A stretch of DNA of 64,000 nucleotides from Azolla caroliniana (Eukaryota > Plantae > Polypodiophyta). Within the stretch, counting starts at the first letter, position 1, and each line of letters opens with the position of its first letter. Positions 1 to 33,703 of this stretch are shown here, piece after piece. Both the position numbers and the translations under genes were made by a program. The notes under the pieces were generated by a model. It was not told where the DNA came from. It did no database searches and was given only the letters and a program-made list of their open reading frames with translations. The stretch lies in assembly GCA_043228905.1 (NCBI GenBank), contig JBHGNT010000001.1, forward strand, positions 7,316,001 through 7,380,000, read 5' to 3'.

Positions 1-82
1 GCTCCGGCATCTCCGTTTGACTGCTTCCGGTTCGGTCTCCTTCCAGTAACGGTTCCTCATCACTGAGGTTGACCGTAACTGG

Positions 83-167
83 TGTTGTAGGCAATGTCGT
101 CAGTGCGGAAGATCAAGAAGCACTCGATTCCTGTTTATTCCCTGCGTATGACAGAGTCATAGATCGT

Positions 168-204
<37 letters not shown>

Positions 205-375
205 CACAAAAGAGTCTTTATTTCATAAAGCAATAATACAACACCCAACCTCACAAAGAGGTTACAAGGTCACTATATATAGTGACCAACTTAGGGCAAC
301 TACCCTTTATGCTAATTACATAAATGGCCAACACGGGATAGTGTGAATACGTCCATTATACACATGTATTCGACA
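83..375 (-). repeat. Copia copy 1 3' LTR
   Basis: tgttgtaggc...attcgaca; contains a (GA)n tract and a TATATATA box; adjacent to the PPT. Confidence 0.97.
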
Positions 376-382
376 CTCCCCC
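376..382 (-). other. Polypurine tract of Copia copy 1
   Basis: Minus-strand GGGGGAG immediately before the 3' LTR. Confidence 0.85.
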
Positions 383-568
383 GTAATGGGCGTATACATG
401 GGTTATCTAAGATTACAGGTATAGACTTAGGTTCTCGGACATATCAGCTTTGTTCGAGTCGGCAGGGTCCGAAGGCAGAAGACCGAACTGGTCGGGTCGG
501 AACAGTTGAAGCCGATCATTAAGGAACTGATGTCGGTTGTCGGGAACCATCCTGCTCTGTGTCCGGCT

Positions 569-3500: not shown

Positions 3501-4585
3501 TTGTGGAGTACAAGTGTAGAGCCACCTGCAAGGTTGAGCTCTACTGTGCCGATTCCGATGATGTCACAGTGTTGTGAGTTGCCGACTCGAACTGAGTCGG
3601 AGTGACGGATCGTATATTGCCGAAATTGGGATCGATGAGGAGTCACGTGAAATGACGCGCCCGAATCTAAGAGCCATGTGCTCGATTCTTCAGTCGTGAG
3701 TAGAACTTCTGATCCGACTGGATTTTCGATTGATAGTATATTCGGGTCGTCCGGTAGTACATCAGCTGAGAAGCTGACGTAATTGATCTCCTCATGACGG
3801 CCACTCTTCTTGTTGTTCTTGTTCTTGAGTGCGCGGCAGTCGGCTTTGATGTGTCCGGGTTTCTTGCAATAGTTGCAGATTCGGTTATCCCGTGACTGGC
3901 TCCGTCTTCGCTGATTGTTCGGCGGTCGTGAGGAATCTCTTCCTCGTATGTTCGATCGGTCTGTCGAACCTTGTACTACGTAAGCGTCGTCTGTTGAGTC
4001 TTTGGCAAAAGACTTTCTCCGAGCTGCTTCGGTCAGAATTGCGCTCGTGACTTCGGAGTATTTGACAGCCGTGGTTGACGCGTTGCACACGGTTGTGACG
4101 AAAGTTTCCCATGATGAGGGAAGGCTGCTCATGAGTATCATTGCTCTGAGTTCATCCTCGATTGCCGTCCCCTGTGACGAGATTTGGGAGCTTATGCTTT
4201 CGTACTCATTGAGGTGTGCTTGAACCGAATCGGATTCTTTCATCCGCAAGTTGTAGAGGCGCCGGATCAGAAACATCTTCGTTGCGGCGACCTTCTTTTC
4301 GTAAGTGTCCGACAGTGTTTTCCACAGTTCGAATGCTGTCGTACACGATTGCACCGTAAAGTATACCGATTCCGATAGGTGCATCCGAATCGTGGCGCGG
4401 ACGATTCTGTCCAGCTTCTGCCACTCAATTGGTTTGTATCCTTCTGGAGGTTCTTCATTTTCGATGGGATCGATTTGCCCCTTGACTATGAGATAGTCCT
4501 GCATTTGCTCCTTCCAGAAGTTAAAGTTCGATCCATCGAACTTTCGTAGACTCATTTCTGACGAGCCGGATGTTGATGCCATCAA
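569..4585 (-). CDS. Copia Gag-Pol polyprotein, 1338 aa (Gag, zinc knuckle, PR, IN, RT, RNase H)
   Basis: Motifs CNYCKKPGHIKADC, WLLDSGAS, WHRRLGH...CEHC, LVHSDVCG, YKARLVAKGF, YVDDML and YTDSDFAG in Copia order (IN before RT). Confidence 0.98.
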   Translation of the reverse strand: MMASTSGSSEMSLRKFDGSNFNFWKEQMQDYLIVKGQIDPIENEEPPEGYKPIEWQKLDRIVRATIRMHLSESVYFTVQSCTTAFELWKTLSDTYEKKVAATKMFLIRRLYNLRMKESDSVQAHLNEYESISSQISSQGTAIEDELRAMILMSSLPSSWETFVTTVCNASTTAVKYSEVTSAILTEAARRKSFAKDSTDDAYVVQGSTDRSNIRGRDSSRPPNNQRRRSQSRDNRICNYCKKPGHIKADCRALKNKNNKKSGRHEEINYVSFSADVLPDDPNILSIENPVGSEVLLTTEESSTWLLDSGASFHVTPHRSQFRQYTIRHSDSVRVGNSQHCDIIGIGTVELNLAGGSTLVLHNVRHVPELSRPLISVGQLDEDGIRAGFSSGGWTLHRGNLLLARGPKIHSLYPLHVTLREGNLFLMDIPVSSLWHRRLGHLSKAGITHLSRAGYIPKLSFSDHQFCEHCQYGKQVAASHPTSAPRETRPLDLVHSDVCGPMPHQSLGGASYFVTFIDDSTRKVWAYPIRTKDRVFSIFSDWLAMVENQTGRKLKCFRTDNGGEFKSEEFVKFCRQRGIRREFTAPHSPEQNGIAERMNRTIQERIVSMLQHSGLSDGFWAEALLTAVHIINMSPSRPLGLLIPQELWIGSKPNYDKLRIFGCEAYALIPKDDRRKLAPRSRKCIFLGYGSDGEMGYRLWDPERRQIVRSSDVVFNESAMNPSVEKPIEVRRVTFSDVPTLQEGPALNTRSASRVAEPYTTDSDNSDSAQPNVSVSDHPTSIPDATSPIIPRRSERLSQPPERYSPGIFFTDAGERTSYEETSTSVDSATWHLAMESEMHSIRANKTWDLVELPRNRRALPCKWVYRLKETSDSTTPKYKARLVAKGFRQEYGVDFDEIFSPVVKMTTLRFLLGVVAADNLELIQLDVKTAFLHGDLEEEIYMEQPKGFVATGQEHLVCRLRKSLYGLKQAPRQWYKKFDDFIQSIGFSKSDEDHCLFTNTAQDGSPIFLIIYVDDMLISGRHAGELADLVRQLRLKFAMKDLGPARHILGIKISRHRAKRHLFLSQTDYIGRVLERFNMQSAKSASTPLPMNLRLSQRDCPTSGSEGEDMKSVPYAPAVGSLMYLMVATRPDISHAVGVVSRFMHNPGRSHWNAVKHVFRYLAGTKDHGILFGPNRTSGVVGYTDSDFAGCIDSRKSTTGYCFKFGNGAISWKSKLQECTATSTTEAEYVAASDAAKEALWLGRLAHTFRQVDHDSAPVVYSDSQGAVALSKNPVHHNASKHIDVRYHFVRDCVISGKIGLEKISTTDNVADGMTKCLSADRFRSLRHQMGVTTNQSG

Positions 4586-5261
4586 ATTTGGTTTCGGTTG
4601 GCGAAGCTCGGTTCGGAGTTGACTACGAACCTTGAAGGAGTGCAGCCGGTTGGCTCACCCGATATCGTTCTAGTCGGATTTGAACCCGAGTCGGTTCGGC
4701 TTCGGATATATGTATTTGTTGAACTTGCTCGAATTGACTCCGGTAGCTTGAGGGACAGAACCGACTGGTCTTCCCGGATGTTGCCGAGTCGAAGTGAGCC
4801 CGGTTCGCTTCGGATATATATGCCGAATACCGATTATTGAAACCGATTATCTGGACCGATTCTGCTTCGGGTGGCTGCAGCGACGAGAGAGACAGATCCA
4901 CCTGATCCTCTCGAATGTCGATCAGCCGGATGAAGCACGAATTGGGGTTGTTGTCTTGAGACCGATCTGCACCGAGTGGTTACAACGAGCGGCGAGCAGC
5001 GTTTGTTGACTACTTCGGATGTCGTTTAACCGAATGGAGCACGATCGTGTCAATGATACACAAGGGGATTTCACCTCGAGCGGTTACGATCACAAGGAAC
5101 AGAGTACAACCTGATGGCTTACTCCAAGCAAGAGGATCTAACGCGATGAGGTGCAAAACCTCGTTTTTCTTTTGTTCTTCTTCTCTCTTTTTCGAATGAC
5201 GCAGGAAACCGAATGCTGAGACGACGGCCGACAGCGGATTGAAGGACCGACTACTGTGCAG

Positions 5262-5273
5262 GCTCTGATACCA
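5262..5273 (-). other. Primer binding site (tRNA-iMet), Copia copy 1
   Basis: Minus-strand TGGTATCAGAGC, 2 nt inside the 5' LTR. Confidence 0.95.
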
Positions 5274-5275
5274 GA

Positions 5276-5360
5276 TGTTGTAGGCAATGTCGTCAGTGCG
5301 GAAGATCAAGAAGCACTCGATTCCTGTTTATTCCCTGCGTATGACAGAGTCATAGATCGT

Positions 5361-5397
<37 letters not shown>

Positions 5398-5568
5398 CAC
5401 AAAAGAGTCTTTATTTCATAAAGCAATAATACAACACCCAACCTCACAAAGAGGTTACAAGGTCACTATATATAGTGACCAACTTAGGGCAACTACCCTT
5501 TATGCTAATTACATAAATGGCCAACACGGGATAGTGTGAATACGTCCATTATACACATGTATTCGACA
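5276..5568 (-). repeat. Copia copy 1 5' LTR
   Basis: Direct repeat of 83-375; followed by the TSD ACTGG. Confidence 0.97.
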
Positions 5569-8279
5569 ACTGGTTCTCGTTCTTTCTCTCCCCGGAGCCG
5601 GGACCTCTCGTAGCTTTCAAACTGGATCTGCGCCTCCAGCCTGTCGTCGTGCAGCTGAGCTACAAGTTGCCGGACTTGCTCTAGTTGGTCCTCTGCCAAG
5701 GCTTGAAAGTCTTCGGCAAGCTCATCCCTTATGCCGGTGAAGTCTTCGGAAGTCAGCATATAGCAATCATCTCCCTCCTTCCGCCGGTTCTCTACGTCAG
5801 CCCGGAGCAATTGGAGTTCCGCCGCGTTCGTGGCCCACTTGGTCCACCATTTGACGGAACCGTTGTCAATCAAGCTCTTGGTCTGGTTCAACCAGGCCCA
5901 CATTATATCTTGGATGCGACTTGCTCCCATTTGAGCTCTGCTTTCCACCACTTGTCGCTCCTCCTTCAACTGCTTGATGAGGTTTGCCGTATCCTCCGCC
6001 TGCTCTCTGTAGCGCGTCAGCTGCCCTTGATATGTCGTTTGCAGCCTCTGCAGTACCTCTGCCGCTCTTTCTTTTTCCGCCTGCTGTTGCCTGAGGAGCT
6101 CTGTCCGAACCTTCTCCGCCTCTTCCAACCGTCTTCTGTTTTCCGCTTGTTCCTTAGCGAATGCGGTTGCGGTCCGATCAACTGCTTGCCGGAGCTCATC
6201 CGTCCGTTCCTTGTGCTCCGTTTGCAACCGTTTATACTCCCGGTGCAATTGCTCAAATTCCTCCGTTTTTTGTTTGAGCTTGCCGTTGATCTGGCGATGG
6301 TTCCGGTCCTCCCGGTCCTTTACCTGCCGGAGTTCCTCTTTCAGGCTCTCTACTTCTGTTTCGGCGTTCCTCCGGAGCCTCTCCTTCTCTTGCAGCATTT
6401 TCTCCTTCTCCTCCTTGAGCCGGTCGTATGCTTGGTGGCCTTTCCGTAAGCTCTCCTCGGCCCGGCGTAGATTCTCAGCAGTCTTTTTGAGTTCTGCCTC
6501 CGCTGCCGTCTTCAATTCTCTTTCGCGGCTCCTCAGCGCTTCTTGGGCAGCTAGCTCATCCTTTAAATCCGCAAGCTCTTGGGCTTGTGCCGCATTTCTC
6601 TCCGGAACGGTTTCCGTTGCCGGGGTCTGATTGCTATGTACAGGGTGATTTGACACTTTATTCTGTACATTGCCCGGAGTCACCGGTGCTTGGACTTGTG
6701 TTTCCCTTGTGACCCTGTCCAAGTCTTGTTCAAGGCTCCGGATTCTGGACCGGGCCGTCTCTAGATCTACGGTTGTGACGAGCAACCGTTCCTGGTGCGC
6801 TCTCTCTTCCGCCTCTATATACTCGACCACTCCGGCGATTTGCTCGCCTACCCACCGTAGCCACATGCTACTGGTGCCCTGTTGCTGTACTGGTCGGGTC
6901 GGCTCATTCATCGTGGAATTGTCTGGCCTGATTGCCTGCATATGCCGTTCTGGTTCTACTCCTTGGCCGCCGTGTGCTCTGGCTGGGCTCGCAGGCTGTT
7001 GAGTTCCGGTTCTCGCCGTTTCCGGAGCCGTTGGACTGACTTCTTCTATAGAAGTCGACAAGACCGGTTCCCTACGGACCGGTTCCGGTTCTTCCCTTGT
7101 GGTTTGCTCAGGTTGAGTTGGGGGCGTTTCTGCCTCTCGCGGGTACGACCGCTCCCCTCCTGTCTCGGCGGTCCTACTTCTCGACCGTCGTTGGAGGTGC
7201 TCTTCTGGCTCCTCCGTTTCCTCTTCCTGTGTCACGGCATGTTTCTGTGCCGTCAAGGGTTCCGGTTCCTTCTGTCCTGGTCTCCGTAAGGTTATCTTGA
7301 CGGGTCGGACCGGTGACACCTCCTCCGGTTCTGGGACCCGTTTCTTCCCTTTCGTCGCCTTCGACGCCAGCAGCTGCTGTCGTTTGGACGCCGGCTTCGA
7401 GGTGCTTCCTTCCGATACTCTTGGCCGCTTCTTTGGCTGGACGGTCTCGACCGGCGGCACGAGCAATGTTATCCATTGAGCTACGGCGTGCCACAGCTTC
7501 CGGCCCTCCTTGCCGTCCTTCCCTCGTACCATGTCGATTGCCATGCACAACCCGTCTGCAATCAACACCGGCCAGTCCACCTTGACCCATTCATAGGTGG
7601 CTATGATCATCCCTGCCCGATTTTTTGGCATGACAGGGGGTCGGGGGTACACGTGACCGTACTCATGGAGCACTCGAGCTATCTCCCTGAATAGCGGATC
7701 TTCGCCGCCCTGCGTCCGATAGCCTTTGCCGGCAACAGAGTACTCACCGAAATATCGGGTGAGTTGCTCCGAGGTTGGGTTATCGATCTGAAAGATTCCT
7801 CCCTCCGGAAGGCCTGTTAGCGCGCGGATCGCTTCCTCGGTGATGACCTCTGTGGCGAGCTCCTTGATGACCCGGTCGGCTTCTCTGTGCGGCGGTGCCT
7901 CCATGATGGCCAAGAACCCCTCCAGTCCGTTTTGCCTGAACCATTTCCTGGCCGCTTCCGACAGTGTTTGTGGTTCCATGTCTGCTTCAAGGTCGAGAGA
8001 AGATGGCGAGGTAGAGTGGTGATGAGAGTGAGAGCGAGAGAGAGAGCGTTCTGAGCGCGGGGGTTCTCTGCGTGCAGGTTCGCGTTTGCTCAGCTTCCAC
8101 TGTCTTGGTGCTTCTGTGCTTCTTGGCTCGCGAAATGAAAAGGTCTCCATGCGTTCTGTTTCTTCTTTGTGCGTTTTGGCGCCTTTTTCGAGCATGCACA
8201 CGTCGTGTACCAATTTAGTATTAAGTAGCATGGCGTCTCTTAAATGCCCACTACGTACCTTTTCGCGCCTCGCTTTCAC
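5569..8279 (-). CDS. Gypsy extra ORF (ORF2): PMD/transposon-protein-like N-terminal region, disordered linker, long coiled coil; disrupted by the Copia insertion
   Basis: ORF track 5505-8279; the last ~19 codons come from the Copia LTR. The track start is GTG and the first ATG is at 8231. Motif ITEEAIRALTGLP; E/K/R/Q-rich heptad region. Continues in frame at 82-1 (PVTVNLSDEEPLLEGDRTGSSQTEMPE). Confidence 0.8.

Positions 8280-8306: not shown

Positions 8307-8344
<38 letters not shown>
8307..8344 (-). repeat. A38 homopolymer between pol and ORF2
   Basis: T-run 8307-8344 on the + strand, flanked by AATGA on both sides. Confidence 0.9.
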
Positions 8345-11300: not shown

Positions 11301-13995
11301 CCGGCTTTGATTCGTCTTTGCTTCCTAGGTTCACTTCGTCGAGCTGGGATGCTTTTACCCGTTGGGAAACGGCCATTTCCCGTTCCAACGCTTCCTGTGC
11401 TTGCCGTAATTCCCGAATCGCATCTTTGTCTGGTTCGGCTTCGGTGTCGTCCCGCTGCGGCAAGTATGCGGCTACGGCTTCAGCTACGTCAATCTCGAAG
11501 AGTGGTACGATCTTCGGATGTTCCTCCAAGTACTGGGCTTCTTCGTCGTCCGCCAATCCTTCAAGCATGTTCACACATTCCGCATACAGCGGTGTGCATT
11601 CCTTACCGTTGCTCGTCCGTGGTTGTGTCGGTACCCGGACCTTGGCTTTTCCGCGCCGGAAGGTAATCATATTTTTTCGCCAATTTTGCTTGATGTGTGC
11701 TGTTTTCAACCATGGTCTGCCCAGCAGCAGTGGGTACGCGCCTTGCGCCTGTAGCTGCAGCACTACAGCCGAGATGTGAAATGTGTGGCCTCCTATGGTG
11801 ACTTCCAATTTCCGTATTAAGCCCGTCGGCCGTACAGAGCTCGTATCCGCCATCCGTAGCCAGAACGGACATGGCTCCCATTCATGTATACCCAAGGCAT
11901 CACACGTGCGAAGGCTTATTACGTTCACTCCGGAACCTCCATCGATTACTGTGCCGGGAAGTTCGTGCCCTTTGACAATAGCTGTGATCACCGGACTACT
12001 AGTGTCCACCACCGTCGGTCCCTCCTCCGGATTCGAGAAAAGGACTGGTGCCGGTGGAGCTATACCGTCTGTCATGACCGTTTTTAGTCCTTCTGTGAAT
12101 CGCGGCACGAGCTGTAAGAGTCTTCCTAGTGGTAACGTGATCTGACATTCTTGTAGTGCTTGCCATGTCTCGTTTTCTGGGTGGCTACCGCCGGTACTCC
12201 CTATGGTCTTCGCCTTTTGCCGTTCCGCGTCCGCGACGTTTCTTTCATTGGCTTCCTTCACCCATTCCGTCGCCTGTTTTCGTATGGCCTCTTGTGTTTC
12301 CCATTCTTTGGCCATGCCTTTCGACCGTGTGGTTACTTGCTGTAAATCCGCCACCACCATATTAACTGCTGGTCGTTTCTCGTAGCTCTTTACCGGGCAC
12401 TGGTTACTGTAGTGGCCTTCCTGCCTGCAGTAGTAGCAGTACTCTTTACGGGTATTGCTGGATTCAGCATTGCTGGTAGCCGGAGTCGGTCCCGTAGCGA
12501 GTGGTGCGTTCTGTGCCGGTTGGCTCCTTGGGGTTCCATGTTCCGGGTCCCTAGGGTGACCACCTTTCTTGAAATTACGTTTCTTATTATTCTTATGTTT
12601 ATTTCGGTAGTCCGGTCGTGGTGGATCGTAAAATCGGGCGTAGTCCTCCTGGTGCCTTCGGTAACCAGGGGAATGGTCTCTGTCGTATTGCTCGTGTCGC
12701 CTGTTGGGCTCTCGATAACGGTCCGATCGCTCATACCGGTCGTAGTTATCACGCCGATTCCCTAACCGGCCATCATTCTCTTGCCTGTCTCCGTACCGGA
12801 CATCCTGTGCCGGTCGGTACCGGTTCATTTTTTGCCAACGATCTTCCTCTTCGTCTTGGCTGTTTCTTGGCTCGATCCGTCGGATGGGTGGTGCTTGTCG
12901 GTTTAACAGGTTATACTCGCACCGGTCCGTTGTATGACTCTTGGATTGACAAATCACACACTGAGTGCGCATGGTGCACTCTACTGCCGAGTGTCCGGCA
13001 TTCAAGCAGATTGTGCATTGAATTGCCTGCCGGAACCGGAGATCTTCCTCGGTGGGTAACGCCCGTTGCAGTGTTCCCAGCGTAAGCCATGAGCTTGTCT
13101 TTTCCATTTCTCTGACCCGGTCAATGACCTGATCGATGGTGCATCCTCGAAAGTCGATCACCGTACACACCGTGCGTAACGGTTCCCGGAGTGCGTTTAA
13201 AAATATCGTCCGTAATTCCTCCTCCGGGGGTGCACGGGCAAGCTGGCTATGCATTCGTTGGAAACGGATGACGAATTGGGGTATGCTTTCCCCTGCCTCC
13301 TGCCGGATCGTATAAAACAAGCCCACCATTGTCGTCTGGTCGACCTCCTTGTGGAAAAAATGCAAGAATTTTGCTTTTAATTCTGCAAATGTTGTGATGG
13401 TCGCCGGGTCCTGCGACCGCCGCCATCGTGTCGCTGGTCCCTCCAACGTGACTCCGAATTCCGCTATCTTCGAGCGTTCTTCTTCCTCCGGTGTCATTCG
13501 CTGGGACGTGTGATTTGCTTCCCATGTCTGCTCGAAGTCATCCACATGCGCTTCCGCATCCGGATCATCGCGGTACTTTGAGTATTGGAACGGCATGTCG
13601 TCGTCCAGTATTAAGCCGCGGTTTAGTGGCGTTTGTTGATATTTTTCCGGTTCTTTCTCCGGTTCGACTTCCGGTTCTTCTACCGGTCCTTTTTCCGGTT
13701 CTTTTTCCGGCTCTTCTTCCGGTACCTTTGCCGGCTCTTTCGTTGGTGTTAGTGGCTTTGCTTCTTCCACTTCCGGTGTTGGTGGGTTGAAGGCTTCCGT
13801 TTGCGATTCCGGATAGCCCTGGTTGAGCGGTTCCGGTTCTGGAGTCGGCACGGTATCCGACCCGTCGTCTTCCGGGCCGCCGGGGGTATCGTTGCTGCTC
13901 CGGTAGTTCGTGTGCACGCTGTATCCCCCTTCGGAATCCAATTCGTAGGCTGAAAAGGCTTCTGCCTCGTTTTCTCCGCTTGCCAGCGCCTCCAT
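8362..13995 (-). CDS. Gypsy Gag-Pol polyprotein, 1877 aa (Gag, 3 zinc knuckles, PR, RT, RNase H, IN)
   Basis: IDGGSGVN protease; RVCVDYRKLN and VFLDDF RT; FVDASD and YSTTERE RNase H; H-H-C-C plus WGLDFVGPF integrase; C-terminal GKLRFRWTGPY...VNGFRLKPY; no chromodomain. Confidence 0.97.
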   Translation of the reverse strand: MEALASGENEAEAFSAYELDSEGGYSVHTNYRSSNDTPGGPEDDGSDTVPTPEPEPLNQGYPESQTEAFNPPTPEVEEAKPLTPTKEPAKVPEEEPEKEPEKGPVEEPEVEPEKEPEKYQQTPLNRGLILDDDMPFQYSKYRDDPDAEAHVDDFEQTWEANHTSQRMTPEEEERSKIAEFGVTLEGPATRWRRSQDPATITTFAELKAKFLHFFHKEVDQTTMVGLFYTIRQEAGESIPQFVIRFQRMHSQLARAPPEEELRTIFLNALREPLRTVCTVIDFRGCTIDQVIDRVREMEKTSSWLTLGTLQRALPTEEDLRFRQAIQCTICLNAGHSAVECTMRTQCVICQSKSHTTDRCEYNLLNRQAPPIRRIEPRNSQDEEEDRWQKMNRYRPAQDVRYGDRQENDGRLGNRRDNYDRYERSDRYREPNRRHEQYDRDHSPGYRRHQEDYARFYDPPRPDYRNKHKNNKKRNFKKGGHPRDPEHGTPRSQPAQNAPLATGPTPATSNAESSNTRKEYCYYCRQEGHYSNQCPVKSYEKRPAVNMVVADLQQVTTRSKGMAKEWETQEAIRKQATEWVKEANERNVADAERQKAKTIGSTGGSHPENETWQALQECQITLPLGRLLQLVPRFTEGLKTVMTDGIAPPAPVLFSNPEEGPTVVDTSSPVITAIVKGHELPGTVIDGGSGVNVISLRTCDALGIHEWEPCPFWLRMADTSSVRPTGLIRKLEVTIGGHTFHISAVVLQLQAQGAYPLLLGRPWLKTAHIKQNWRKNMITFRRGKAKVRVPTQPRTSNGKECTPLYAECVNMLEGLADDEEAQYLEEHPKIVPLFEIDVAEAVAAYLPQRDDTEAEPDKDAIRELRQAQEALEREMAVSQRVKASQLDEVNLGSKDESKPVHIAKEMKPEDKAAMIKLLTEFRDVFAWSYEDMRGLDPQLYQHQIHLGKDAKPVAQRRYRMNPNYAAKVKEEIDKLLRVGFIRPVKKATWLSPIVVVPKKNGKIRVCVDYRKLNAATITDAFPLPFTDGVLDAVAGHEVYSFLDGFSGYNQIRMHPDDQEKTAFVTEWGVFVAEVMMFGLKTAPATFQRIIMEIFGEYIPAFMQVFLDDFAVYSRGKDHLQHLRLCLEKCRLYRLSLNPAKCIFGVSSGILLGHIVSKEGIAVDPDKVNAILGAPAPKTAKALSRFLGQIRWHSRMLRHLADLATPLHTAVHRTPFQWTDTEDKAYNALKVLLSQAPVVQPPDWSKEFHVFVDASDIAIGSALMQLTEPKWYRPVYYASRKLSQAEKNYSTTEREALGMIYSVTKFRHYLLGRKFSFHVDHSALLYLVSKASLTGKLARWTLLLQEFEFEIFHRPGIQHAVADYLSRLESGEPGDGVADEFPDAELFRITPETAADDTVASEDKWLTNMHQFLSTGLPPEEMNRDERKRLAVQSRNFCLLRDTLYHKGADGIWRRAVRSDEKEVILREAHCGVAGGHYAGEATARKVWQSGLWWPTTLKDAVKYAKECDLCQRMGQPTEQARMPHQPVLPLEPFQKWGLDFVGPFKPPAMRTGNRYVIVATDYCTKWVEAKALRDNTASSTAKFLYENIWCRYGCPIELISDQGGHFLGQVVESLTTFYAVVHKRSTPYYPQANGLAESTNKTLQNILRKIVNENRTDWDTKLHSALWAYRTAYKTSIRTTPFRLAFGLEAVMPVEFQVPSLRIQLRERLNEKKSEEIRLAALCELEEQRLASILHMELEQRRRKAFVDRHRKGNEKMFEIGKPVLVFQTRMGKMPGKLRFRWTGPYWLTREYNGSYQIGTLAGEVVGKWVNGFRLKPYNGPMPKNPFMQLTGTTPGTCPGSVRIDPEEKDDGEPVVETKEDTATRKENGQGPKGPTDM

Positions 13996-14164
13996 GGGTT
14001 ATCTAAGATTACAGGTATAGACTTAGGTTCTCGGACATATCAGCTTTGTTCGAGTCGGCAGGGTCCGAAGGCAGAAGACCGAACTGGTCGGGTCGGAACA
14101 GTTGAAGCCGATCATTAAGGAACTGATGTCGGTTGTCGGGAACCATCCTGCTCTGTGTCCGGCT

Positions 14165-17100
14165 CTAACCGGACTGGTTTGTCGTTACGCCCATCTGATG
14201 CCGAAGAGACCGAAAACGGTCTGCCGAAAGACACTTGGTCATTCCATCTGCGACATTGTCGGTTGTGGATATTTTCTCTAGACCGATTTTCCCTGAGATG
14301 ACGCAGTCCCGAACGAAGTGATATCGAACGTCGATATGCTTGGAGGCGTTGTGGTGAACCGGATTTTTCGACAAGGCAACAGCACCTTGACTGTCGCTGT
14401 AGACAACTGGAGCCGAGTCATGGTCGACTTGTCGAAACGTGTGCGCCAGCCGACCAAGCCATAAGGCTTCTTTTGCTGCGTCGGACGCAGCTACATATTC
14501 TGCTTCGGTCGTTGAGGTCGCTGTGCATTCCTGAAGTTTCGACTTCCACGAGATTGCTCCATTGCCGAATTTGAAGCAGTATCCGGTTGTTGATTTTCGA
14601 CTGTCTATACAGCCGGCGAAGTCCGAGTCGGTGTAACCGACTACGCCTGAGGTTCGGTTCGGACCGAAAAGAATGCCATGGTCTTTTGTGCCAGCCAGAT
14701 ATCTGAACACATGCTTGACTGCGTTCCAATGCGATCGGCCAGGATTGTGCATAAATCTGCTAACGACTCCTACGGCATGAGAGATATCAGGCCGTGTCGC
14801 GACCATCAGGTACATAAGGGAGCCGACTGCCGGTGCATACGGTACCGACTTCATATCTTCCCCCTCCGAACCGGATGTCGGGCAGTCTCGCTGAGAGAGC
14901 CGAAGATTCATGGGGAGCGGGGTTGAAGCAGATTTGGCTGATTGCATGTTGAAGCGTTCCAAGACACGTCCGATATAGTCGGTCTGAGACAAAAAAAGAT
15001 GTCGTTTAGCGCGATGCCGACTAATCTTGATGCCAAGGATGTGTCGTGCCGGACCGAGGTCCTTCATGGCAAACTTCAACCGCAGTTGCCGAACGAGATC
15101 GGCAAGTTCGCCCGCGTGGCGTCCAGAAATTAGCATGTCGTCCACGTAAATGATGAGGAAGATGGGTGATCCATCTTGAGCTGTGTTGGTGAAGAGACAA
15201 TGGTCCTCATCGCTTTTGGAGAAGCCGATCGATTGGATGAAGTCGTCGAACTTCTTGTACCATTGTCGTGGTGCCTGTTTGAGGCCGTATAGACTCTTCC
15301 TGAGTCGGCAGACTAGATGTTCTTGGCCAGTTGCCACGAAGCCTTTCGGCTGCTCCATATAAATTTCTTCCTCGAGATCACCATGGAGGAAGGCTGTTTT
15401 GACATCTAGCTGAATCAGCTCCAAGTTGTCGGCGGCCACTACGCCGAGTAGAAAACGAAGGGTTGTCATTTTCACCACTGGTGAAAAAATCTCGTCGAAG
15501 TCGACGCCATATTCTTGTCGGAAGCCCTTCGCAACTAATCTGGCCTTGTACTTTGGGGTGGTCGAATCAGACGTCTCTTTTAGTCGATAAACCCACTTGC
15601 AAGGAAGAGCACGTCGGTTCCTAGGTAATTCGACCAGATCCCAAGTCTTGTTTGCTCGAATGGAGTGCATTTCCGACTCCATCGCCAGATGCCAGGTGGC
15701 GGAATCGACAGATGTCGATGCTTCTTCGTAAGACGTCCGTTCGCCGGCGTCGGTGAAGAAAATTCCAGGAGAGTACCTCTCCGGAGGTTGCGACAGTCTC
15801 TCGGATCGTCGAGGTATGATTGGACTGGTCGCATCGGGTATCGAGGTCGGATGGTCCGAAACCGAAACATTCGGCTGTGCCGAGTCAGAGTTGTCCGAGT
15901 CGGTAGTATAAGGTTCAGCTACCCGTGAAGCTGACCGTGTGTTGAGAGCGGGGCCTTCTTGAAGAGTCGGCACATCGGAGAATGTTACCCTTCGGACTTC
16001 GATCGGTTTTTCGACTGATGGATTCATAGCCGACTCGTTGAACACAACGTCCGAACTTCGAACGATTTGCCTGCGTTCGGGGTCCCAGAGTCGGTATCCC
16101 ATTTCGCCGTCTGATCCATATCCAAGGAAAATGCATTTCCTGGACCGAGGTGCAAGTTTTCGGCGATCATCTTTCGGAATAAGGGCGTACGCCTCACATC
16201 CGAAGATCCTCAGCTTGTCGTAATTCGGCTTACTGCCGATCCATAGTTCCTGAGGAATTAGAAGTCCTAGAGGTCTACTTGGCGACATATTGATTATGTG
16301 TACTGCCGTGAGTAGAGCCTCTGCCCAGAAGCCATCCGACAGTCCGGAGTGTTGGAGCATGGAAACTATCCTTTCTTGGATTGTCCGATTCATCCGTTCG
16401 GCAATCCCGTTTTGCTCCGGGCTGTGTGGTGCCGTAAATTCACGTCTGATGCCGCGTTGTCGGCAGAATTTGACGAATTCTTCGGATTTGAACTCTCCAC
16501 CGTTGTCTGTCCGAAAGCATTTCAGTTTTCGGCCGGTTTGATTTTCTACCATAGCGAGCCAATCTGAGAAGATCGAGAAGACCCGATCTTTAGTGCGAAT
16601 TGGATAAGCCCACACCTTTCGAGTCGAATCGTCAATAAAGGTGACGAAGTAAGAGGCACCGCCAAGAGACTGATGCGGCATTGGGCCGCAGACGTCCGAG
16701 TGGACTAAATCGAGAGGTCTCGTTTCTCTTGGTGCTGATGTCGGGTGTGATGCGGCTACTTGTTTGCCATACTGGCAATGCTCGCAGAATTGATGGTCGG
16801 AGAAGGAGAGTTTGGGGATGTATCCGGCTCTAGATAGGTGCGTGATGCCGGCCTTGCTGAGGTGTCCTAATCTTCGGTGCCATAGTGATGACACAGGAAT
16901 ATCCATCAGAAACAGGTTACCCTCTCTGAGCGTAACATGTAACGGATACAGGGAGTGTATCTTGGGTCCTCTAGCAAGCAGGAGGTTCCCCCTGTGGAGT
17001 GTCCACCCTCCCGAAGAAAAACCGGCACGAATGCCGTCTTCATCTAGTTGTCCGACTGAGATCAATGGCCTTGAGAGCTCGGGTACATGTCGGACATTGT

Positions 17101-18181
17101 GGAGTACAAGTGTAGAGCCACCTGCAAGGTTGAGCTCTACTGTGCCGATTCCGATGATGTCACAGTGTTGTGAGTTGCCGACTCGAACTGAGTCGGAGTG
17201 ACGGATCGTATATTGCCGAAATTGGGATCGATGAGGAGTCACGTGAAATGACGCGCCCGAATCTAAGAGCCATGTGCTCGATTCTTCAGTCGTGAGTAGA
17301 ACTTCTGATCCGACTGGATTTTCGATTGATAGTATATTCGGGTCGTCCGGTAGTACATCAGCTGAGAAGCTGACGTAATTGATCTCCTCATGACGGCCAC
17401 TCTTCTTGTTGTTCTTGTTCTTGAGTGCGCGGCAGTCGGCTTTGATGTGTCCGGGTTTCTTGCAATAGTTGCAGATTCGGTTATCCCGTGACTGGCTCCG
17501 TCTTCGCTGATTGTTCGGCGGTCGTGAGGAATCTCTTCCTCGTATGTTCGATCGGTCTGTCGAACCTTGTACTACGTAAGCGTCGTCTGTTGAGTCTTTG
17601 GCAAAAGACTTTCTCCGAGCTGCTTCGGTCAGAATTGCGCTCGTGACTTCGGAGTATTTGACAGCCGTGGTTGACGCGTTGCACACGGTTGTGACGAAAG
17701 TTTCCCATGATGAGGGAAGGCTGCTCATGAGTATCATTGCTCTGAGTTCATCCTCGATTGCCGTCCCCTGTGACGAGATTTGGGAGCTTATGCTTTCGTA
17801 CTCATTGAGGTGTGCTTGAACCGAATCGGATTCTTTCATCCGCAAGTTGTAGAGGCGCCGGATCAGAAACATCTTCGTTGCGGCGACCTTCTTTTCGTAA
17901 GTGTCCGACAGTGTTTTCCACAGTTCGAATGCTGTCGTACACGATTGCACCGTAAAGTATACCGATTCCGATAGGTGCATCCGAATCGTGGCGCGGACGA
18001 TTCTGTCCAGCTTCTGCCACTCAATTGGTTTGTATCCTTCTGGAGGTTCTTCATTTTCGATGGGATCGATTTGCCCCTTGACTATGAGATAGTCCTGCAT
18101 TTGCTCCTTCCAGAAGTTAAAGTTCGATCCATCGAACTTTCGTAGACTCATTTCTGACGAGCCGGATGTTGATGCCATCAA
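14165..18181 (-). CDS. Copia Gag-Pol polyprotein, 1338 aa, copy 2
   Basis: Same as 569-4585 except T->A in SYEE(T/A)STS. Confidence 0.98.
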   Translation of the reverse strand: MMASTSGSSEMSLRKFDGSNFNFWKEQMQDYLIVKGQIDPIENEEPPEGYKPIEWQKLDRIVRATIRMHLSESVYFTVQSCTTAFELWKTLSDTYEKKVAATKMFLIRRLYNLRMKESDSVQAHLNEYESISSQISSQGTAIEDELRAMILMSSLPSSWETFVTTVCNASTTAVKYSEVTSAILTEAARRKSFAKDSTDDAYVVQGSTDRSNIRGRDSSRPPNNQRRRSQSRDNRICNYCKKPGHIKADCRALKNKNNKKSGRHEEINYVSFSADVLPDDPNILSIENPVGSEVLLTTEESSTWLLDSGASFHVTPHRSQFRQYTIRHSDSVRVGNSQHCDIIGIGTVELNLAGGSTLVLHNVRHVPELSRPLISVGQLDEDGIRAGFSSGGWTLHRGNLLLARGPKIHSLYPLHVTLREGNLFLMDIPVSSLWHRRLGHLSKAGITHLSRAGYIPKLSFSDHQFCEHCQYGKQVAASHPTSAPRETRPLDLVHSDVCGPMPHQSLGGASYFVTFIDDSTRKVWAYPIRTKDRVFSIFSDWLAMVENQTGRKLKCFRTDNGGEFKSEEFVKFCRQRGIRREFTAPHSPEQNGIAERMNRTIQERIVSMLQHSGLSDGFWAEALLTAVHIINMSPSRPLGLLIPQELWIGSKPNYDKLRIFGCEAYALIPKDDRRKLAPRSRKCIFLGYGSDGEMGYRLWDPERRQIVRSSDVVFNESAMNPSVEKPIEVRRVTFSDVPTLQEGPALNTRSASRVAEPYTTDSDNSDSAQPNVSVSDHPTSIPDATSPIIPRRSERLSQPPERYSPGIFFTDAGERTSYEEASTSVDSATWHLAMESEMHSIRANKTWDLVELPRNRRALPCKWVYRLKETSDSTTPKYKARLVAKGFRQEYGVDFDEIFSPVVKMTTLRFLLGVVAADNLELIQLDVKTAFLHGDLEEEIYMEQPKGFVATGQEHLVCRLRKSLYGLKQAPRQWYKKFDDFIQSIGFSKSDEDHCLFTNTAQDGSPIFLIIYVDDMLISGRHAGELADLVRQLRLKFAMKDLGPARHILGIKISRHRAKRHLFLSQTDYIGRVLERFNMQSAKSASTPLPMNLRLSQRDCPTSGSEGEDMKSVPYAPAVGSLMYLMVATRPDISHAVGVVSRFMHNPGRSHWNAVKHVFRYLAGTKDHGILFGPNRTSGVVGYTDSDFAGCIDSRKSTTGYCFKFGNGAISWKSKLQECTATSTTEAEYVAASDAAKEALWLGRLAHTFRQVDHDSAPVVYSDSQGAVALSKNPVHHNASKHIDVRYHFVRDCVISGKIGLEKISTTDNVADGMTKCLSADRFRSLRHQMGVTTNQSG

Positions 18182-18857
18182 ATTTGGTTTCGGTTGGCGA
18201 AGCTCGGTTCGGAGTTGACTACGAACCTTGAAGGAGTGCAGCCGGTTGGCTCACCCGATATCGTTCTAGTCGGATTTGAACCCGAGTCGGTTCGGCTTCG
18301 GATATATGTATTTGTTGAACTTGCTCGAATTGACTCCGGTAGCTTGAGGGACAGAACCGACTGGTCTTCCCGGATGTTGCCGAGTCGGAGTGAGCCCGGT
18401 TCGCTTCGGATATATATGCCGAATACCGATTATTGAAACCGATTATCTGGACCGATTCTGCTTCGGGTGGCTGCAGCGACGAGAGAGACAGATCCACCTG
18501 ATCCTCTCGAATGTCGATCAGCCGGATGAAGCACGAATTGGGGTTGTTGTCTTGAGACCGATCTGCACCGAGTGGTTACAACGAGCGGCGAGCAGCGTTT
18601 GTTGACTACTTCGGATGTCGTTTAACCGAATGGAGCACGATCGTGTCAATGATACACAAGGGGATTTCACCTCGAGCGGTTACGATCACAAGGAACAGAG
18701 TACAACCTGATGGCTTACTCCAAGCAAGAGGATCTAACGCGATGAGGTGCAAAACCTCGTTTTTCTTTTGTTCTTCTTCTCTCTTTTTCGAATGACGCAG
18801 GAAACCGAATGCTGAGACGACGGCCGACAGCGGATTGAAGGACCGACTACTGTGCAG

Positions 18858-18869
18858 GCTCTGATACCA
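18858..18869 (-). other. Primer binding site (tRNA-iMet), Copia copy 2
   Basis: Minus-strand TGGTATCAGAGC next to the LTR. Confidence 0.95.
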
Positions 18870-18871
18870 GA

Positions 18872-18956
18872 TGTTGTAGGCAATGTCGTCAGTGCGGAAG
18901 ATCAAGAAGCACTCGATTCCTGTTTATTCCCTGCGTATGACAGAGTCATAGATCGT

Positions 18957-18993
<37 letters not shown>

Positions 18994-19164
18994 CACAAAA
19001 GAGTCTTTATTTCATAAAGCAATAATACAACACCCAACCTCACAAAGAGGTTACAAGGTCACTATATATAGTGACCAACTTAGGGCAACTACCCTTTATG
19101 CTAATTACATAAATGGCCAACACGGGATAGTGTGAATACGTCCATTATACACATGTATTCGACA
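18872..19164 (-). repeat. Copia copy 2 5' LTR
   Basis: Third 293-bp copy of the same LTR; followed by CCATG. Confidence 0.97.
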
Positions 19165-22097
19165 CCATGCCCCATTGGGGCAAACCATACCTTCCTATAC
19201 TTTGAGCTAAAATGTGACACCTCCCACACCACCAACTCTAGTAAACCAACCCATCACACTATAATACATTTCACGCATGAGCTCGCGGACATCTACTCTC
19301 GACATGTTCAAGCCCATCTTTCCTCGTTTGATTCTTCCTTGCCTTTAGAGAACCTCACTACAGAACTCACACACATCCTTCACTCAGCCGCCACTAGTAG
19401 CTTCCCATACACGAAAGACTCCAATCATAGTAGAATAGGGTCTATGCCACAAAACAAGTGGTATGACGAGGATTGTAGAGAGTTGTATCGACAACTTAAA
19501 GTATCGCGACTCAGTGGTACTATCTCCTTAGTACAGGCTCGCAAAGAGATGCGCAAGATGACACGTCGTAAAAGACGAGCTTGGGAAGCATCTCAATATT
19601 GGGAACTCTATCATATGCTCATGAGTAGGGATTGTGCCCTTGCATGGAAGAGACTACGGGAACCGAGACCACAAACACCCATCGAGGATCCCAATATTTG
19701 GCACACATATACCGAGAGACTCTACCATGTCCCGAACCAACCACCCATTCCAATGCCCTCCACACCTCGACCTACCATGGGGACACTTTTCACGACCTCT
19801 AGGGTCACGAAGGTCATAAAAAAAAATTACAACATAGGAAATCCATGGACCACACAGGATTGCGAGCCGAGCACATCATATATGCTCGAGAGTGCCTAGC
19901 TCCCCTTCTCACTCTAATCTTCAACCGCGCCCTCGCCGAGGGTTTTCCACCACAATGGGCCATGAACACTGTGGCCCCTATACATAAAGGAGGGGACCCA
20001 ATGGACCCAAATACATATAGGACCATTATGATAGGTCATACGCTTGCTAAACTATATGGTGCAGTAATGGAAGCGGAGCTCAGTGATTATATGGAAACAT
20101 TAAGTCTTCGAGCACCTGAGCAGGCTGGCTTTAGACGAGCCTTCTCCACTATTGACCACATCTTCACACTTAGGTGCTTAATTGACCAAACAAAGGCTCG
20201 TAAGAAGAAACTATATTGTTGCTTTGTGGACTTTCGCAAAGCCTTTGATACAGTTCCTAGGGAGAGGTTGTTTGATAGACTTAAGAGCTTGGAGATACCA
20301 AATGACATGATTTGGGCCATTTATGCCCTATATGAGCAAGTCTATGGGCGCGTAAGATGCCCAGGTGGCCTATCCGATTGTTTCACTAGCACCATTGGTG
20401 TAAAACAGGGTTGCCCCCTATCACCGACTCTTTTTGGGATCTACATTGATGAGATCACTGATTTTATTGCTCGTAAGGGAGGCAAAGGAGTGGCTATTAG
20501 GGATACGCAAGTTAGTCTCTTACTCTACGCAGACGACATTGTCTTGCTCTCGGAGTCGGAACACGACCTACAAAAGCATCTTAATGCCCTAGATGACTTT
20601 TGTACACAACGAGGACTGGTAGTGAATCTAGCGAAAACTAAAGTCCTTATCTTTCATACATCGTCCAGAGTTAGGAGTAAATGTCACCTCATCCTCTCTC
20701 ATAAACTAGTTGAGGTGGTGGGATCTTATGTATACTTGGGAGTCACTTTTAGTGCTCGCTCAGGTAAATTCTCGATGACCCAGGCAGCCAAAGATAGGCT
20801 AACGAGAGGATATGCATCCCTCTCACTCTTAGAGAGACAATGCCACCAAGCATACTTTCAAGAGCCACGGACTAAGGGATGGCTTTTCGACTCATTAGTG
20901 ACCCCGTCCCTCATGTATGCATCAGTAGTATGGGCTCCAGGTCTACCATCTTTCATGTGGACGCAATTGGAGAGACCTTTAGTGGTGATGTTATCACGTC
21001 AACTCCGAAGCAAATCGACAGTACCACATGACATTATTAGAGCGGAGTTTAGCCTACCCCCGATGTTAGTAGAAGCACTCTTTCAAGTGGTAGCTTTTAT
21101 TCATCGGATACATAGTCAACCACAAGATAGGATATCCCGTCGAGCCTTTGAGGCATCCCGATCCTTACATGTATCTGGAGACACCAACTCTTGGTATAGC
21201 ATTGTGGTGAGTTGGTTATTTGCAAATGGCATAGACATTAATAACCTACCTCCCCTTAAGTACAACCATGGGACTGATCAAACTTTAATCTCTCGTGAAG
21301 ATCGTAATAAAGTGATACGCCAAGAAATATGGCAAATCTACACTCGATACAAATGGATCACCCCACGAGAGCCACTCCCATCTAAAATGGTGTACTATAA
21401 GGAACACTTCTTGCACTTTTCTAAGTTAGGGTTTATTACACGACCAAGATACCTAGATACTTTCTTATCAAATGCACTAAGGGTGGCCATTGGACAACTT
21501 AGGATATCATCTCACCAACTTGAGATTGAGAATGGTCGAGCTAATAGAATCCCTAGAGAGGAAAGGCTATGTAGGTTATGCCACATAGAGATAGAGGATG
21601 AGTATCACTTCACATGCAAGTGCCCAACTTATGCCGAGATACGGGCGGAATACCAAGACATACTAGGACCCTCTCCCACCCTCTCCAAACTATTAGATAC
21701 CCCGAGTGTAAAGAGACTAGGTAGGTATATCTTAGAGCTAAAACAACATAGGGAGGATAAATTACAAAGTGTTAATCATAACCCTTTTACTACTCATCAA
21801 CATGTACCTAGTGTAATTTTTCAGGAACATGGGGAGACGATGAATGTGGATACACTCATGCCGCTCGGCCTCTCCCTTGAGGAAGCAGAAATACAAAGAG
21901 CAACCAAACGTCCTCGGATGTTGGGCTTCAACACAAGTCAACGTGGAGTAGAAAAGATTAAGAAGATAAGGGAACGTGAGCTACGTCGACTCGAAGCTAT
22001 GGTTGGGGTACCTCTTACATGGGGACCACGGGCCACATCCACATCATGGCAACCCTTTGACCCCCCGCTTCTCTTCGAGAGACTTGGATGGAAATGA
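19165..22097 (+). pseudogene. LINE ORF2 (EN end, RT, CCHC) with one frameshift
   Basis: ORFs 19132-19899 and 19845-22097 join through the A9 run at 19818-19826. Motifs QAGFR, FVDFRKAFD, GVKQGCPLSP, LYADD, YLG, LRISSHQLEIENGR and CRLC...EDEYHFTCKC. Confidence 0.9.
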
Positions 22098-22332
22098 AAT
22101 TAGGCCTAGTATAGAATCATTCTCATTGTAGAACATGTTTTTTATATAGAACATGTTTGTTGTTTTCTTAGAACTATTTAGCTTAAACTCTATTTTATCT
22201 TATTTTTATTTTCGATGAATGGGTAAATATCCCATTTTTGTTGTACACCATTTGTCTCATGGGCCAATTTTGGCCTTAGAAGACGTTAATATATCTTTCT
22301 TTCTTTCTTTCTTTCTCTCTCTCTCTCTCTCT
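19165..22332 (+). mobile_element. RTE-X-like LINE, 5' part missing (cut by the Copia 2 LTR)
   Basis: End of an endonuclease-like domain (GANH, equivalent to SDH), RT, C-terminal CCHC, 3' UTR, and a (TTTC)n then (TC)n tail at ~22294-22332. Confidence 0.8.
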
Positions 22333-25985: not shown

Positions 25986-26182
25986 ATCCAATGAGGTTTT
26001 GTGGTTGAGACAAAAAAATGACAACTAATTGTTTTGTGTGTGAATTTAAACCATACCAAAACAATCAATGCAACCACATAACCTACCCTTGCTCATCAAC
26101 TTGCCCTCGAGTTCACGGAATGTTATGATCAGAGGATATTAAAGATGAAACACACATCGATATAGTAATCTTGATATCATGT

Positions 26183-31354: not shown

Positions 31355-31823
31355 AATATCAACTTGGTTTGACATGATTCCAAAGTTAGGGAGAGAGCGA
31401 GTCGGTGTGTTGTTGACTACGAATGTTAAAGAGGTCTCCGATAGAGTTTGTGCAATGAAGCAGAAGTCTGTTTTTTTGTTGGCGGTGTTCTGTCCGCGCG
31501 GACGGCCGGCCGGCCTTGTGTTGCCCCCAATATTCTTGATGGACTCTCTTTCTCTTTGGAAGCCCCCCCCCACCACGACAAACTTACTACAAAGTATATA
31601 ACCCTTACAACAGACAAAAGAGAAGATCCGGGCGCTCAGTGTGAAACCGGAGGAGAGAGAAAACACACACAACAGAGTAGAGAGAGAGAGACACACACAC
31701 ACAGATGTCCTCATCTCTGTCTCTGTCTCTGTTTCTCTCTCCTTCCTTCGGTCTGCGCTCTGCAGAGCGTGGGCGGGGCTCGTGGAACAGCGGAAGGAGG
31801 AGGAGAGACTGAGCAGAGAAGAT

Positions 31824-33111: not shown

Positions 33112-33703
33112 TGGAAGAGATTATCTTGACATGGATGATTGTTTCAAGTTGCGAACTTGAGGATGAGTTCTCGCAGGACTCTAACTGGATTCAATAATTG
33201 TTGTTGCGGGTATTATCTGGGGAGGATAAAAAGTTAATGAGAAACAATCTTGTATGACTCTTAACAAGTCAGACCAATGCTAATAGAATGTAATTAACAA
33301 GGGGTTTTCTAAGTCATCTTCATTACTGACTTTAGACAAAGACTACAGTTGAATATGACATGTGCCTATTTATTTTACTGCAGAATTTTCATTCCATAGC
33401 CAGTTGAGGTTCTTAGGCTATTGATGGTGTCTAGTTTAAGTTTTATTTAGGAATACGCGCTCATCAGGAGAGGTCAGAAGTTATTGAATTTCGACCTTTT
33501 CCTGAAAAGAGATCTAGGTTACCAGATTGGTGATTTTGCCAAGTGTTATGTGCACATTTCGTATTTCTTAAAGTTTTATTTAGACTTTTGGTTGCATTTA
33601 TTATTACATAAAGCTGCGTGCATGAGAATTAGGGCTGGGATTATCTCAATCAGGGTTGAGGTTATATTTTGCACATCCAACAAATTTGACCTGCATCTGT
33701 CAT

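Follow-up and report, generated by a model that had tools for sequence, protein, structure and literature searches.

Truncated LTR retrotransposons that arise by illegitimate recombination, very young ones included, are the rule in plant genomes (PMC1940013). Captures of foreign sequence mediated by LTRs have also been documented, and these show a median microsimilarity of about 6 bp (Tan et al. 2016, PMC5131818). Complex elements of the LTR-int-LTR-int-LTR type are made by template switching or by unequal recombination (Sabot and Schulman 2007, PMC1950507). The locus described here lies in a stretch of DNA of 64 kb, which was analysed as a whole and is called the window below. In it a Ty1/Copia element runs directly into the gag-pol frame of a Ty3/Gypsy element (Table 1). 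To judge from the comparison with relatives, and with a probability of roughly 0.78, the junction is the scar of a deletion after integration, which fused a 3'-truncated Copia to a 5'-truncated Gypsy of the same orientation. The route would have been illegitimate recombination or end joining.

Table 1. Positions of the elements at the Copia-Gypsy junction and of their neighbours in the window.
Feature	Position	Strand	Basis or remark
Copia copy 1, complete, nested in Gypsy ORF2	83..5568	-	LTRs, PBS, gag-pol, PPT, TSD
Gypsy ORF2, extra ORF downstream of pol	5574..8279	-	homologous and collinear in relatives
A38 tract between pol and ORF2	8307..8344	-	A19 at the homologous place in L001
Ty3/Gypsy gag-pol, 5'-truncated, frame open over 1877 codons	8362..13992	-	Pfam and relatives
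Copia-Gypsy junction, CATGG	13992..13996	-	CATG, last Copia bases; G, first Gypsy-matching base
Ty1/Copia copy 2, 3'-truncated	13993..19164	-	match to copy 1 and Pfam
5' LTR of copy 2, 293 bp, TG...CA	18872..19164	-	100% identical to both LTRs of copy 1
Pentamer beside the 5' LTR of copy 2, presumed TSD	19165..19169	-	CATGG on the minus strand, CCATG on the plus strand
LINE fragment flanking the 5' LTR of copy 2	19170..22332	+	RVT_1 match

The window contains two Copia copies. Copy 1 has every feature of a complete Ty1/Copia element that was tested: two identical LTRs of 293 bp each (83-375 and 5276-5568), a PBS and a PPT, and a perfect 5-bp TSD, CCAGT (5573-5569 and 82-78); its gag-pol occupies 569-4585. 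By this structure it is an independent simple insertion. A reading of both copies as one complex element was ruled out, because copy 1 is a simple insertion with a perfect TSD of its own.

Copy 2 aligns with positions 397-5568 of copy 1 over 5172 bp with 4 substitutions. As originally predicted, the match ends at a CATG (13996-13993, minus strand), and the sequences diverge beyond it. Copy 1 runs on past its CATG with 21 bp that include the PPT and then enters the LTR; these last 21 bp of the internal region and the 293-bp 3' LTR are missing from copy 2, in agreement with the reported absence of the PPT and 3' LTR. The 5' LTR of copy 2 is followed by TC and by a tRNA-iMet-type PBS at 18869-18858. 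The gag-pol ORF of 1338 aa (14165-18181, minus strand) is intact and has its Pfam domains in the Copia order: Retrotran_gag_2 at aa 40-191, rve at 487-588 and RVT_2 at 844-1089. The 3' UTR measures 169 nt from the Copia stop codon to the junction ATG, not 168 bp as had been stated. The TSD is visible only as the pentamer flanking the 5' LTR, where the CCATG noted earlier was found, and is possibly retained at the junction. With its 5' LTR and PBS present and its PPT and 3' LTR absent, copy 2 is a truncated, not a complete, Ty1/Copia member.

On the other side of the junction, an intact Gypsy gag-pol had been described that begins at the junction ATG. The frame itself is there: it is the longest ORF of the minus strand (13995-8362, 1877 aa), it starts at that ATG (13995-13993) and it has the Ty3/Gypsy domain order (Retrotrans_gag 182-271, zf-CCHC 519-534, RVT_1 995-1153, RT_RNaseH 1241-1345, rve 1530-1629). 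It was compared with 23 loci of the same Gypsy lineage, 70-90% identical, which come from metagenome assemblies and not from this genome; in 20 of these 23 the match begins at residue 1. The closest relative, L001 (90% DNA identity over 6878 bp), carries an intact ORF of 1936 aa. Its start lies upstream by 74 codons, and a PBS precedes this ATG by about 30 nt. Homology between the window and L001 starts only at position 320 of L001, which is codon 75/76, and residues 1-1876 of the window's ORF match residues 75-1935 of the L001 ORF at 92.9%. L001 and L005 both show the LTR end, the PBS, about 30 nt, the ATG and then the 74 additional codons. These N-terminal 74 residues are conserved in at least seven independent relatives (P0001/4/5/7, P0024, P0072, P0086). 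The Gypsy 5' LTR and PBS had been reported absent, and neither a Gypsy LTR nor a PBS was found anywhere in the 64-kb window, nor was any trace of the missing Gypsy 5' part; a Gypsy 3' LTR would be expected left of the window.

Homology switches abruptly at one point. Copia ends at 13993, Gypsy homology in BLAST begins at 13992 for L001 and at 13991 for 12 other relatives, and both sides are truncated compared with intact relatives. At the break, 13 relatives show CCTC[G/C]AGGC and the window has CATGGAGGC. None of the 13 relatives that cover the site has a CATG there, and the same junction is absent from all 13 of these related loci. Because the relatives read CCTC[G/C]AGGC at this place, the junction ATG, which had been taken for the native start of the Gypsy, is on the alignment part of the Copia 3' UTR and falls in frame by coincidence. 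It is indeed the first ATG of the ORF, as claimed, but partly in a trivial way, an in-frame TAA in the Copia UTR (14001-13999) lying two codons upstream. Since the ORF of the relatives starts 74 codons further upstream and the ATG is Copia sequence, the Gypsy is evidently 5'-truncated, without 5' LTR, PBS, leader and first 74 gag codons, and is not an intact cassette. It is much less likely that it represents a Gypsy subfamily with a natively shorter N-terminus.

The A38 tract and ORF2, which follow pol, had been counted among the parts of a composite element. Both belong to the Gypsy lineage. ORF2 is homologous and collinear in L001, L005, L022, L014, L019 and L007, and L005 carries it intact, with 978 aa, at 3394-6330. 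In the window it is split by Copia copy 1 and resumes in frame at 77-1, up to the window edge. ORF2 has no Pfam match, and look-ups for it and for the upstream ORF of the LINE gave weak leads only. Judged from the relatives, this lineage normally carries both the A-run and ORF2, and neither is extra cargo; the A38 is, by the same comparison, a native homopolymer of the family, variable in length. The A-run and ORF2 being native and collinear in relatives, the Gypsy-A38 and the head-to-head LINE were rejected as a twin-priming-type retrocopy of a polyadenylated Gypsy mRNA.

Copy 2 integrated beside the LINE fragment, which holds an RT ORF, frameshifted once, and terminates in a (TTTC)n(TC)n microsatellite. 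The 5' part of the LINE is missing from the window, and no Exo_endo_phos match to an endonuclease domain was obtained in the fragment or elsewhere in the window. Two other arrangements of the LINE were considered and rejected. In one, the first 130 aa of the Gypsy ORF would be an antisense LINE endonuclease and the flanks of copy 2 would be contiguous LINE. The plus-strand ORFs beneath 12618-13953 have no Pfam match even at E=10; the 130 residues have a Gypsy-like composition, and Gypsy homology extends right to 13992. In the other, the LINE would have inserted into the Gypsy, whose 5' part would then lie beyond the LINE on its right; no such part was found there. The AT-rich DNA right of the LINE 3' end does not match the LTR, the leader or the first 225 bp of any relative, and the sole hit is a microsatellite.

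The junction pentamer CATGG is identical to the pentamer flanking the 5' LTR of copy 2. The LTR end and its flank, AACA+CATGG, and the UTR context, AACC+CATG followed by G, agree at 8 of 9 positions. Had the ends been joined bluntly at random, the identity of the pentamers would arise with P of about 0.001 and the agreement of the 9-mers with P of 0.00018. No other CATG occurs within the final 400 nt of the Copia internal region. At the junction itself, Copia (CCCATG, then TATA beyond the break) and native Gypsy (CCTC[G/C], then AGGC) share 0-1 nt. A CATG is missing from native Gypsy at the break and so does not count as microhomology between Copia and Gypsy. Of the proposed microhomology deletion between neighbouring elements, the deletion is the best-supported class of explanation, and the microhomology, as proposed, falls away. 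What remains is a blunt join, or else a CATG repeat that the Copia UTR shares with the target-site duplication of Copia.

The deletion might accordingly have followed one of two courses. The first, to which slightly less than even odds can be given, is one deletion event, 1.5 kb or longer and bluntly joined (0-1 nt), in which the Copia 3' end would have been lost together with the target-site copy downstream of it, the 5' part of the LINE and the 5' end of the Gypsy. In the second, which is tentative and has the odds clearly against it, Copia would have inserted at a CATGG where a truncated LINE and a truncated Gypsy already abutted, and 318 bp would then have been lost between the CATG of the 3' UTR and that of the downstream target-site copy. 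Since the junction CATGG equals the 5' flank CATGG, there is a hint that the loss may be only these 318 bp between two CATG repeats. The direct repeat at the deletion ends is 0-1 nt if the deletion reached the Gypsy, and 4 nt (7/8) if its ends were the CATG of the UTR and that of the downstream target-site copy. The Gypsy frames being still open throughout 8.4 kb, a deletion also demands that every event was very recent. Under either course the locus is a dead-end rearrangement and not a replicating element. With the loss of the Copia LTR that serves for polyadenylation, transcription begun in the Copia 5' LTR might continue into the Gypsy ORF. The coincidence of the two CATGG pentamers stays unexplained by the single large deletion. 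The 318-bp loss requires that Copia landed 0-1 bp from an existing LINE/Gypsy junction (about 1 in 1000), and one extra rearrangement.

It is improbable that the junction is an error of assembly, in which a complete Copia locus and an unconnected Gypsy locus were stitched into one contig. Assemblers have difficulty with two Copia copies at 99.92% identity that lie 8.4 kb apart, and a CCATGG palindrome is present at the junction; nothing specific, however, supports an artefact. Assembler path errors arise inside long shared repeats and swap their flanks, whereas only 0-1 nt are shared here and the break falls between the Copia UTR and the middle of the Gypsy gag. A ligation chimera at a CATG or CCATGG site is unsupported, since these are absent at that place in the Gypsy relatives. 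There is no N run in the window, and the four substitutions that distinguish the Copia copies are kept.

The original prediction also offered the capture of a whole Gypsy cassette by a Copia. During Copia reverse transcription the RT, after copying a co-packaged Gypsy RNA, would have returned to the Copia RNA just upstream of the PPT, giving one integrated unit of Copia 5' LTR, Copia gag-pol, Gypsy gag(delta-N)-pol-ORF2, and Copia PPT and 3' LTR. The locus would then represent only the 5' half of this unit, whose far end would lie left of window position 1. The whole would measure about 15 kb, would have arisen by two template switches inside a Copia particle and would carry two polyprotein genes of different superfamilies between Copia LTRs. 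The common orientation of the two elements, the join only 21 nt upstream of the Copia PPT/LTR and the fully open Gypsy frames all agree with such a chimera, foreign-RNA capture by LTR-mediated template switching is documented (PMC5131818), and plants have complex LTR elements formed by template switching (PMC1950507). It is nevertheless very improbable. The captured Gypsy is not a whole cassette, lacking 74 codons, its ATG is Copia sequence, and the microsimilarity at the junction, 0-1 nt, falls short of the median of about 6 bp for documented captures (PMC5131818). Nor would a chimera be expected to repeat the 5' flank pentamer at the junction. Nothing points to a second switch point or to more copies; within the 64-kb window no second copy of the junction was found. 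The prior is, moreover, far below that of a deletion.

Equally hard to credit is the capture of a broken Copia cDNA at a chromosome break, or its integration at one end with end joining at the other, by which a linear cDNA with a processed 5' LTR end and a degraded 3' end would have joined the LINE end to the Gypsy end in one repair event: the 5' LTR end is exact (TG), the other end stops in the 3' UTR with a blunt join, both flanks are truncated elements themselves and Ty1 cDNA capture at breaks is known in yeast, but a rare intermediate is required, the repeated CATGG is unexplained and no feature tells this event from the single large deletion.

Read as the product of a deletion, the locus is an ordinary scar of an already known kind in a transposon-rich plant genome and not a new two-family hybrid. 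Its biological weight is small; it adds one more case of plant genomes rapidly cutting down young retrotransposons. For annotation, it teaches that two ORFs abruptly joined at an ATG can mimic an engineered fusion, and that comparison with intact relatives exposes both the ATG borrowed from the UTR of a neighbour and the N-terminal truncation of the downstream ORF. The repeated CATGG is a small puzzle. If the 318-bp loss were true, the locus would be a clean example of LTR removal in which a 4-bp internal repeat recombined with the target-site duplication of the same element.

Each of the described systems resembles the locus in part. Like the complex elements of Sabot and Schulman (2007, PMC1950507), it holds, within 19 kb, three LTRs without any difference between them and two internal regions, all from a single family and in a single orientation. 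Unlike in those elements, the Copia copies share no LTR, 8.4 kb of Gypsy lie between them and copy 1 has its own TSD, CCAGT, in the Gypsy ORF2; for these reasons the two copies are separate insertions. Like the chimeric retrocopies made by template switching (PMC5131818, where maize Bs1 is cited), the locus has a 5'-truncated foreign sequence in sense orientation after the internal sequence of an LTR retrotransposon, but it is without microsimilarity at the would-be switch point, and the cargo would be more than 8.4 kb of another retrotransposon instead of a partial mRNA. The truncated LTR retrotransposons of rice (PMC1940013) have likewise lost one LTR with the adjacent internal sequence, are abruptly joined to neighbouring DNA with little or no microhomology, and include very young copies in nested, TE-dense surroundings. 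The locus differs from them in that both partners are otherwise coding-intact, belong to different superfamilies and lie in the same orientation, and in that the join creates an in-frame ATG, which gives it the look of a designed fusion.

The Copia-Gypsy junction is genuinely present in the sequence, where the coordinates and description of the original prediction are correct, and it is most likely the commonplace scar of a deletion that joined two truncated retrotransposons. The order of the elements in the left third of the window was established by self-comparison and direct reading of the sequence. The two LTRs of Copia copy 1, the complete element, are identical to each other and to the LTR of copy 2, its 3'-truncated sister, and the copies differ by 4 substitutions in 5172 bp. 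Copy 2 has neither the 3' LTR nor the final 21 bp of internal sequence, in which the polypurine tract (PPT) lies. Its own 5-bp target-site duplication marks copy 1 as an ordinary nested insertion.

Features of the window; the left third is listed 5' to 3' along the minus strand
Feature	Position	Strand	Remark
LINE fragment	19170-22332	+	outermost, before Copia copy 2
CATGG	19169-19165	-	adjoins 5' LTR of Copia copy 2
Copia copy 2 5' LTR, 293 bp	19164-18872	-	
Copia copy 2 TC and tRNA-iMet-type PBS	directly 3' of 5' LTR	-	
Copia copy 2 gag-pol, 1338 aa	18181-14165	-	
Copia copy 2 3' UTR, 169 nt	ends at 13993	-	last bases CATG, 13996-13993
Gypsy gag-pol ORF	13992-8362	-	
A38	8344-8307	-	between Gypsy pol and ORF2
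Gypsy ORF2	8279-5574	-	then CCAGT
Copia copy 1, complete	5568-83	-	CCAGT on either side
Gypsy ORF2, remainder	77-1	-	beyond second CCAGT to window edge; same frame resumed
bZIP-domain ORF	31641-32705	+	
PPR protein, 642 aa	36390-38318	+	intronless, E motif
HMA-domain exon of heavy-metal ATPase	52612-53316	+	named in original prediction

The CATG that holds the junction ATG also occurs in the 3' UTR of copy 1, so the ATG at the join derives from Copia. Two codons before it, at 14001-13999, stands an in-frame TAA, and any ORF finder therefore reports the first ATG after this stop. The only real coincidences are that this first ATG sits at the join and is in frame. At the break, ...CCCATG is followed by TATA in Copia and ...CCTC[G/C] by AGGC in native Gypsy; the window has ...CCCATG-G-AGGC. 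Gypsy homology begins at 13992/13991; the G at 13992 matches the Gypsy relative L001, and the join is blunt if this G is Gypsy.

A word search with residues 1-330 of the Gypsy ORF found two full-length relatives. The proteins of the cluster (P0001, P0004, P0005 and P0007) all open with a conserved 74-aa segment absent from the window's ORF. With the first 350 aa as query, a full HMMER scan added the closer fragments P0072 (83% identity) and P0024 (76%), in both of which residue 75 pairs with window residue 1 at the alignment start. A scan of ENA metagenome assemblies (ERZ10344xx) with an alignment of these N-termini yielded 23 loci of this lineage, which are not the Azolla genome's own copies and have 67-90% DNA identity to the window. 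Closest of the 23 is L001, with 90% identity to window 13992-7183 across 6878 bp. Its intact ORF of 1936 aa starts about 30 nt past the PBS, which follows the LTR end, and its residues 75-1935 align with window residues 1-1876 at 92.9%. Thirteen relatives carry CCTC[G/C]AGGC at the break position and none of them has CATG there. The missing Gypsy LTR, leader and first 225 coding bases have no match anywhere in the 64 kb. The conserved start, the L001 alignment and the absence of the 5' part indicate that the window's Gypsy is 5'-truncated inside gag; the ORF is thus not the intact one of the original prediction, and its ATG is not the native start.

Two histories of deletion after integration, taken together, would probably account for the junction (probability about 0.78). 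The CATGG at the junction has the same five bases as the pentamer adjoining the 5' LTR of copy 2. Once the last four LTR bases are added (AACA+CATGG), 8 of 9 positions agree with the UTR context (AACC+CATG+G), and the final 400 nt of Copia interior contain no other CATG. A random blunt join between Copia interior and Gypsy would give such a match with probability 0.001 for the pentamer and 0.00018 for the 9-mer. The match is expected under the first history, in which a complete Copia with CATGG at both ends would have lost 318 bp between the CATG of its UTR and that of the downstream target-site copy. The truncated LINE and truncated Gypsy would already have abutted exactly at the insertion site, roughly a 1-in-1000 coincidence that needs one extra rearrangement. 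In the second history, one larger deletion of at least 1.5 kb would have removed the Copia 3' end, the target-site copy, the LINE 5' part and the Gypsy 5' end; this takes fewer events, yet leaves the pentamer match to chance. Both are compatible with the data. One model of the original prediction had the deletion use CATG as a microhomology common to both elements, which fails because native Gypsy has no CATG at the break.

Mis-assembly is unlikely, as the break lies outside any shared repeat and relatives have neither CATG nor CCATGG on the Gypsy side. It is most improbable that reverse transcriptase (RT) template switching produced a chimeric Copia-Gypsy element: the supposed hallmarks, an intact cassette and a native ATG, are refuted, and the join, if blunt, argues against microsimilarity-guided switching, documented junctions having a median of 6 bp in common (PMC5131818). 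It still stands solely because the sequence that would test it decisively falls outside the window. An equally slight chance goes to a broken Copia cDNA having been captured at a chromosome break, a history indistinguishable from the large-deletion variant.

The order gag-pol, A38, ORF2, as listed in the original prediction, is the normal interior of the family: L001 has A19 (5925-5943) at the position of A38, and ORF2 is collinear with pol in six loci (L001, L005, L022, L014, L019 and L007), being intact in L005 (978 aa). The window's A-run has TCATT on either side. ORF2 is a conserved third ORF downstream of pol, of about 980 aa (window 5574-8279 plus 1-77, minus strand; L005:3394-6330). Its product has an acidic, proline-rich middle and a long coiled-coil in the C-terminal half; it has no Pfam match, and the atlas gives weak leads (score 0.75-0.78) to plant transposon-associated proteins (PMD, Transposase_28). 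With a gap of about 0.9 kb between ORF2 homology and the next gag start in the relatives' contigs, the window's Gypsy should end about 0.5-0.8 kb left of position 1, where its own pre-LTR region also lies. In the relatives (L005:6400-6470, 6905-6935; L001:40-65) a CCA ends two bases before the LTR start (TG...), no purine tract is obvious just before the LTR in L005 or L001, and the PBS past the LTR begins TGGCGACCACG. This resembles an arrangement in which a tRNA 3' end replaces the PPT. In the metagenome contig L019 (4447-4741), a related Gypsy has, inside the N-terminal part of its gag, a Copia LTR in opposite orientation that shares 75% identity with the LTR of the window. It is an independent instance of this Copia lineage entering this Gypsy lineage, with a different junction.

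The LINE flank carries plus-strand ORFs at 19132-19899 and 19845-22097 with an RT domain; an endonuclease domain is absent from them, antisense to the Gypsy N-terminus and elsewhere in the window, which bears out the earlier statement that the LINE 5' part is missing here. One frameshift near 19845-19899 breaks the frame (19132-22097), and a Cys/His knuckle closes the ORF. The LINE terminates with a (TTTC)n(TC)n repeat (22297-22332), and the AT-rich DNA beyond has no Gypsy similarity. A second, degenerate RT fragment (24297-26077, minus strand; weak RVT_1 match, E=2.5e-4) does not resemble the first LINE at the nucleotide level. Host genes sit right of the transposon cluster. Self-comparison revealed tandem duplications at 38274-39015, 44288-45112 and 33696-33844, whose repeat units are about 365, 272 and 77 bp long and 85-94% identical.

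Template-switch chimeras and complex LTR elements have been described (PMC5131818; PMC1950507), and the window's locus differs from them in their testable features. In plants, truncation of very young LTR retrotransposons and deletion by illegitimate recombination are the norm (PMC1940013).
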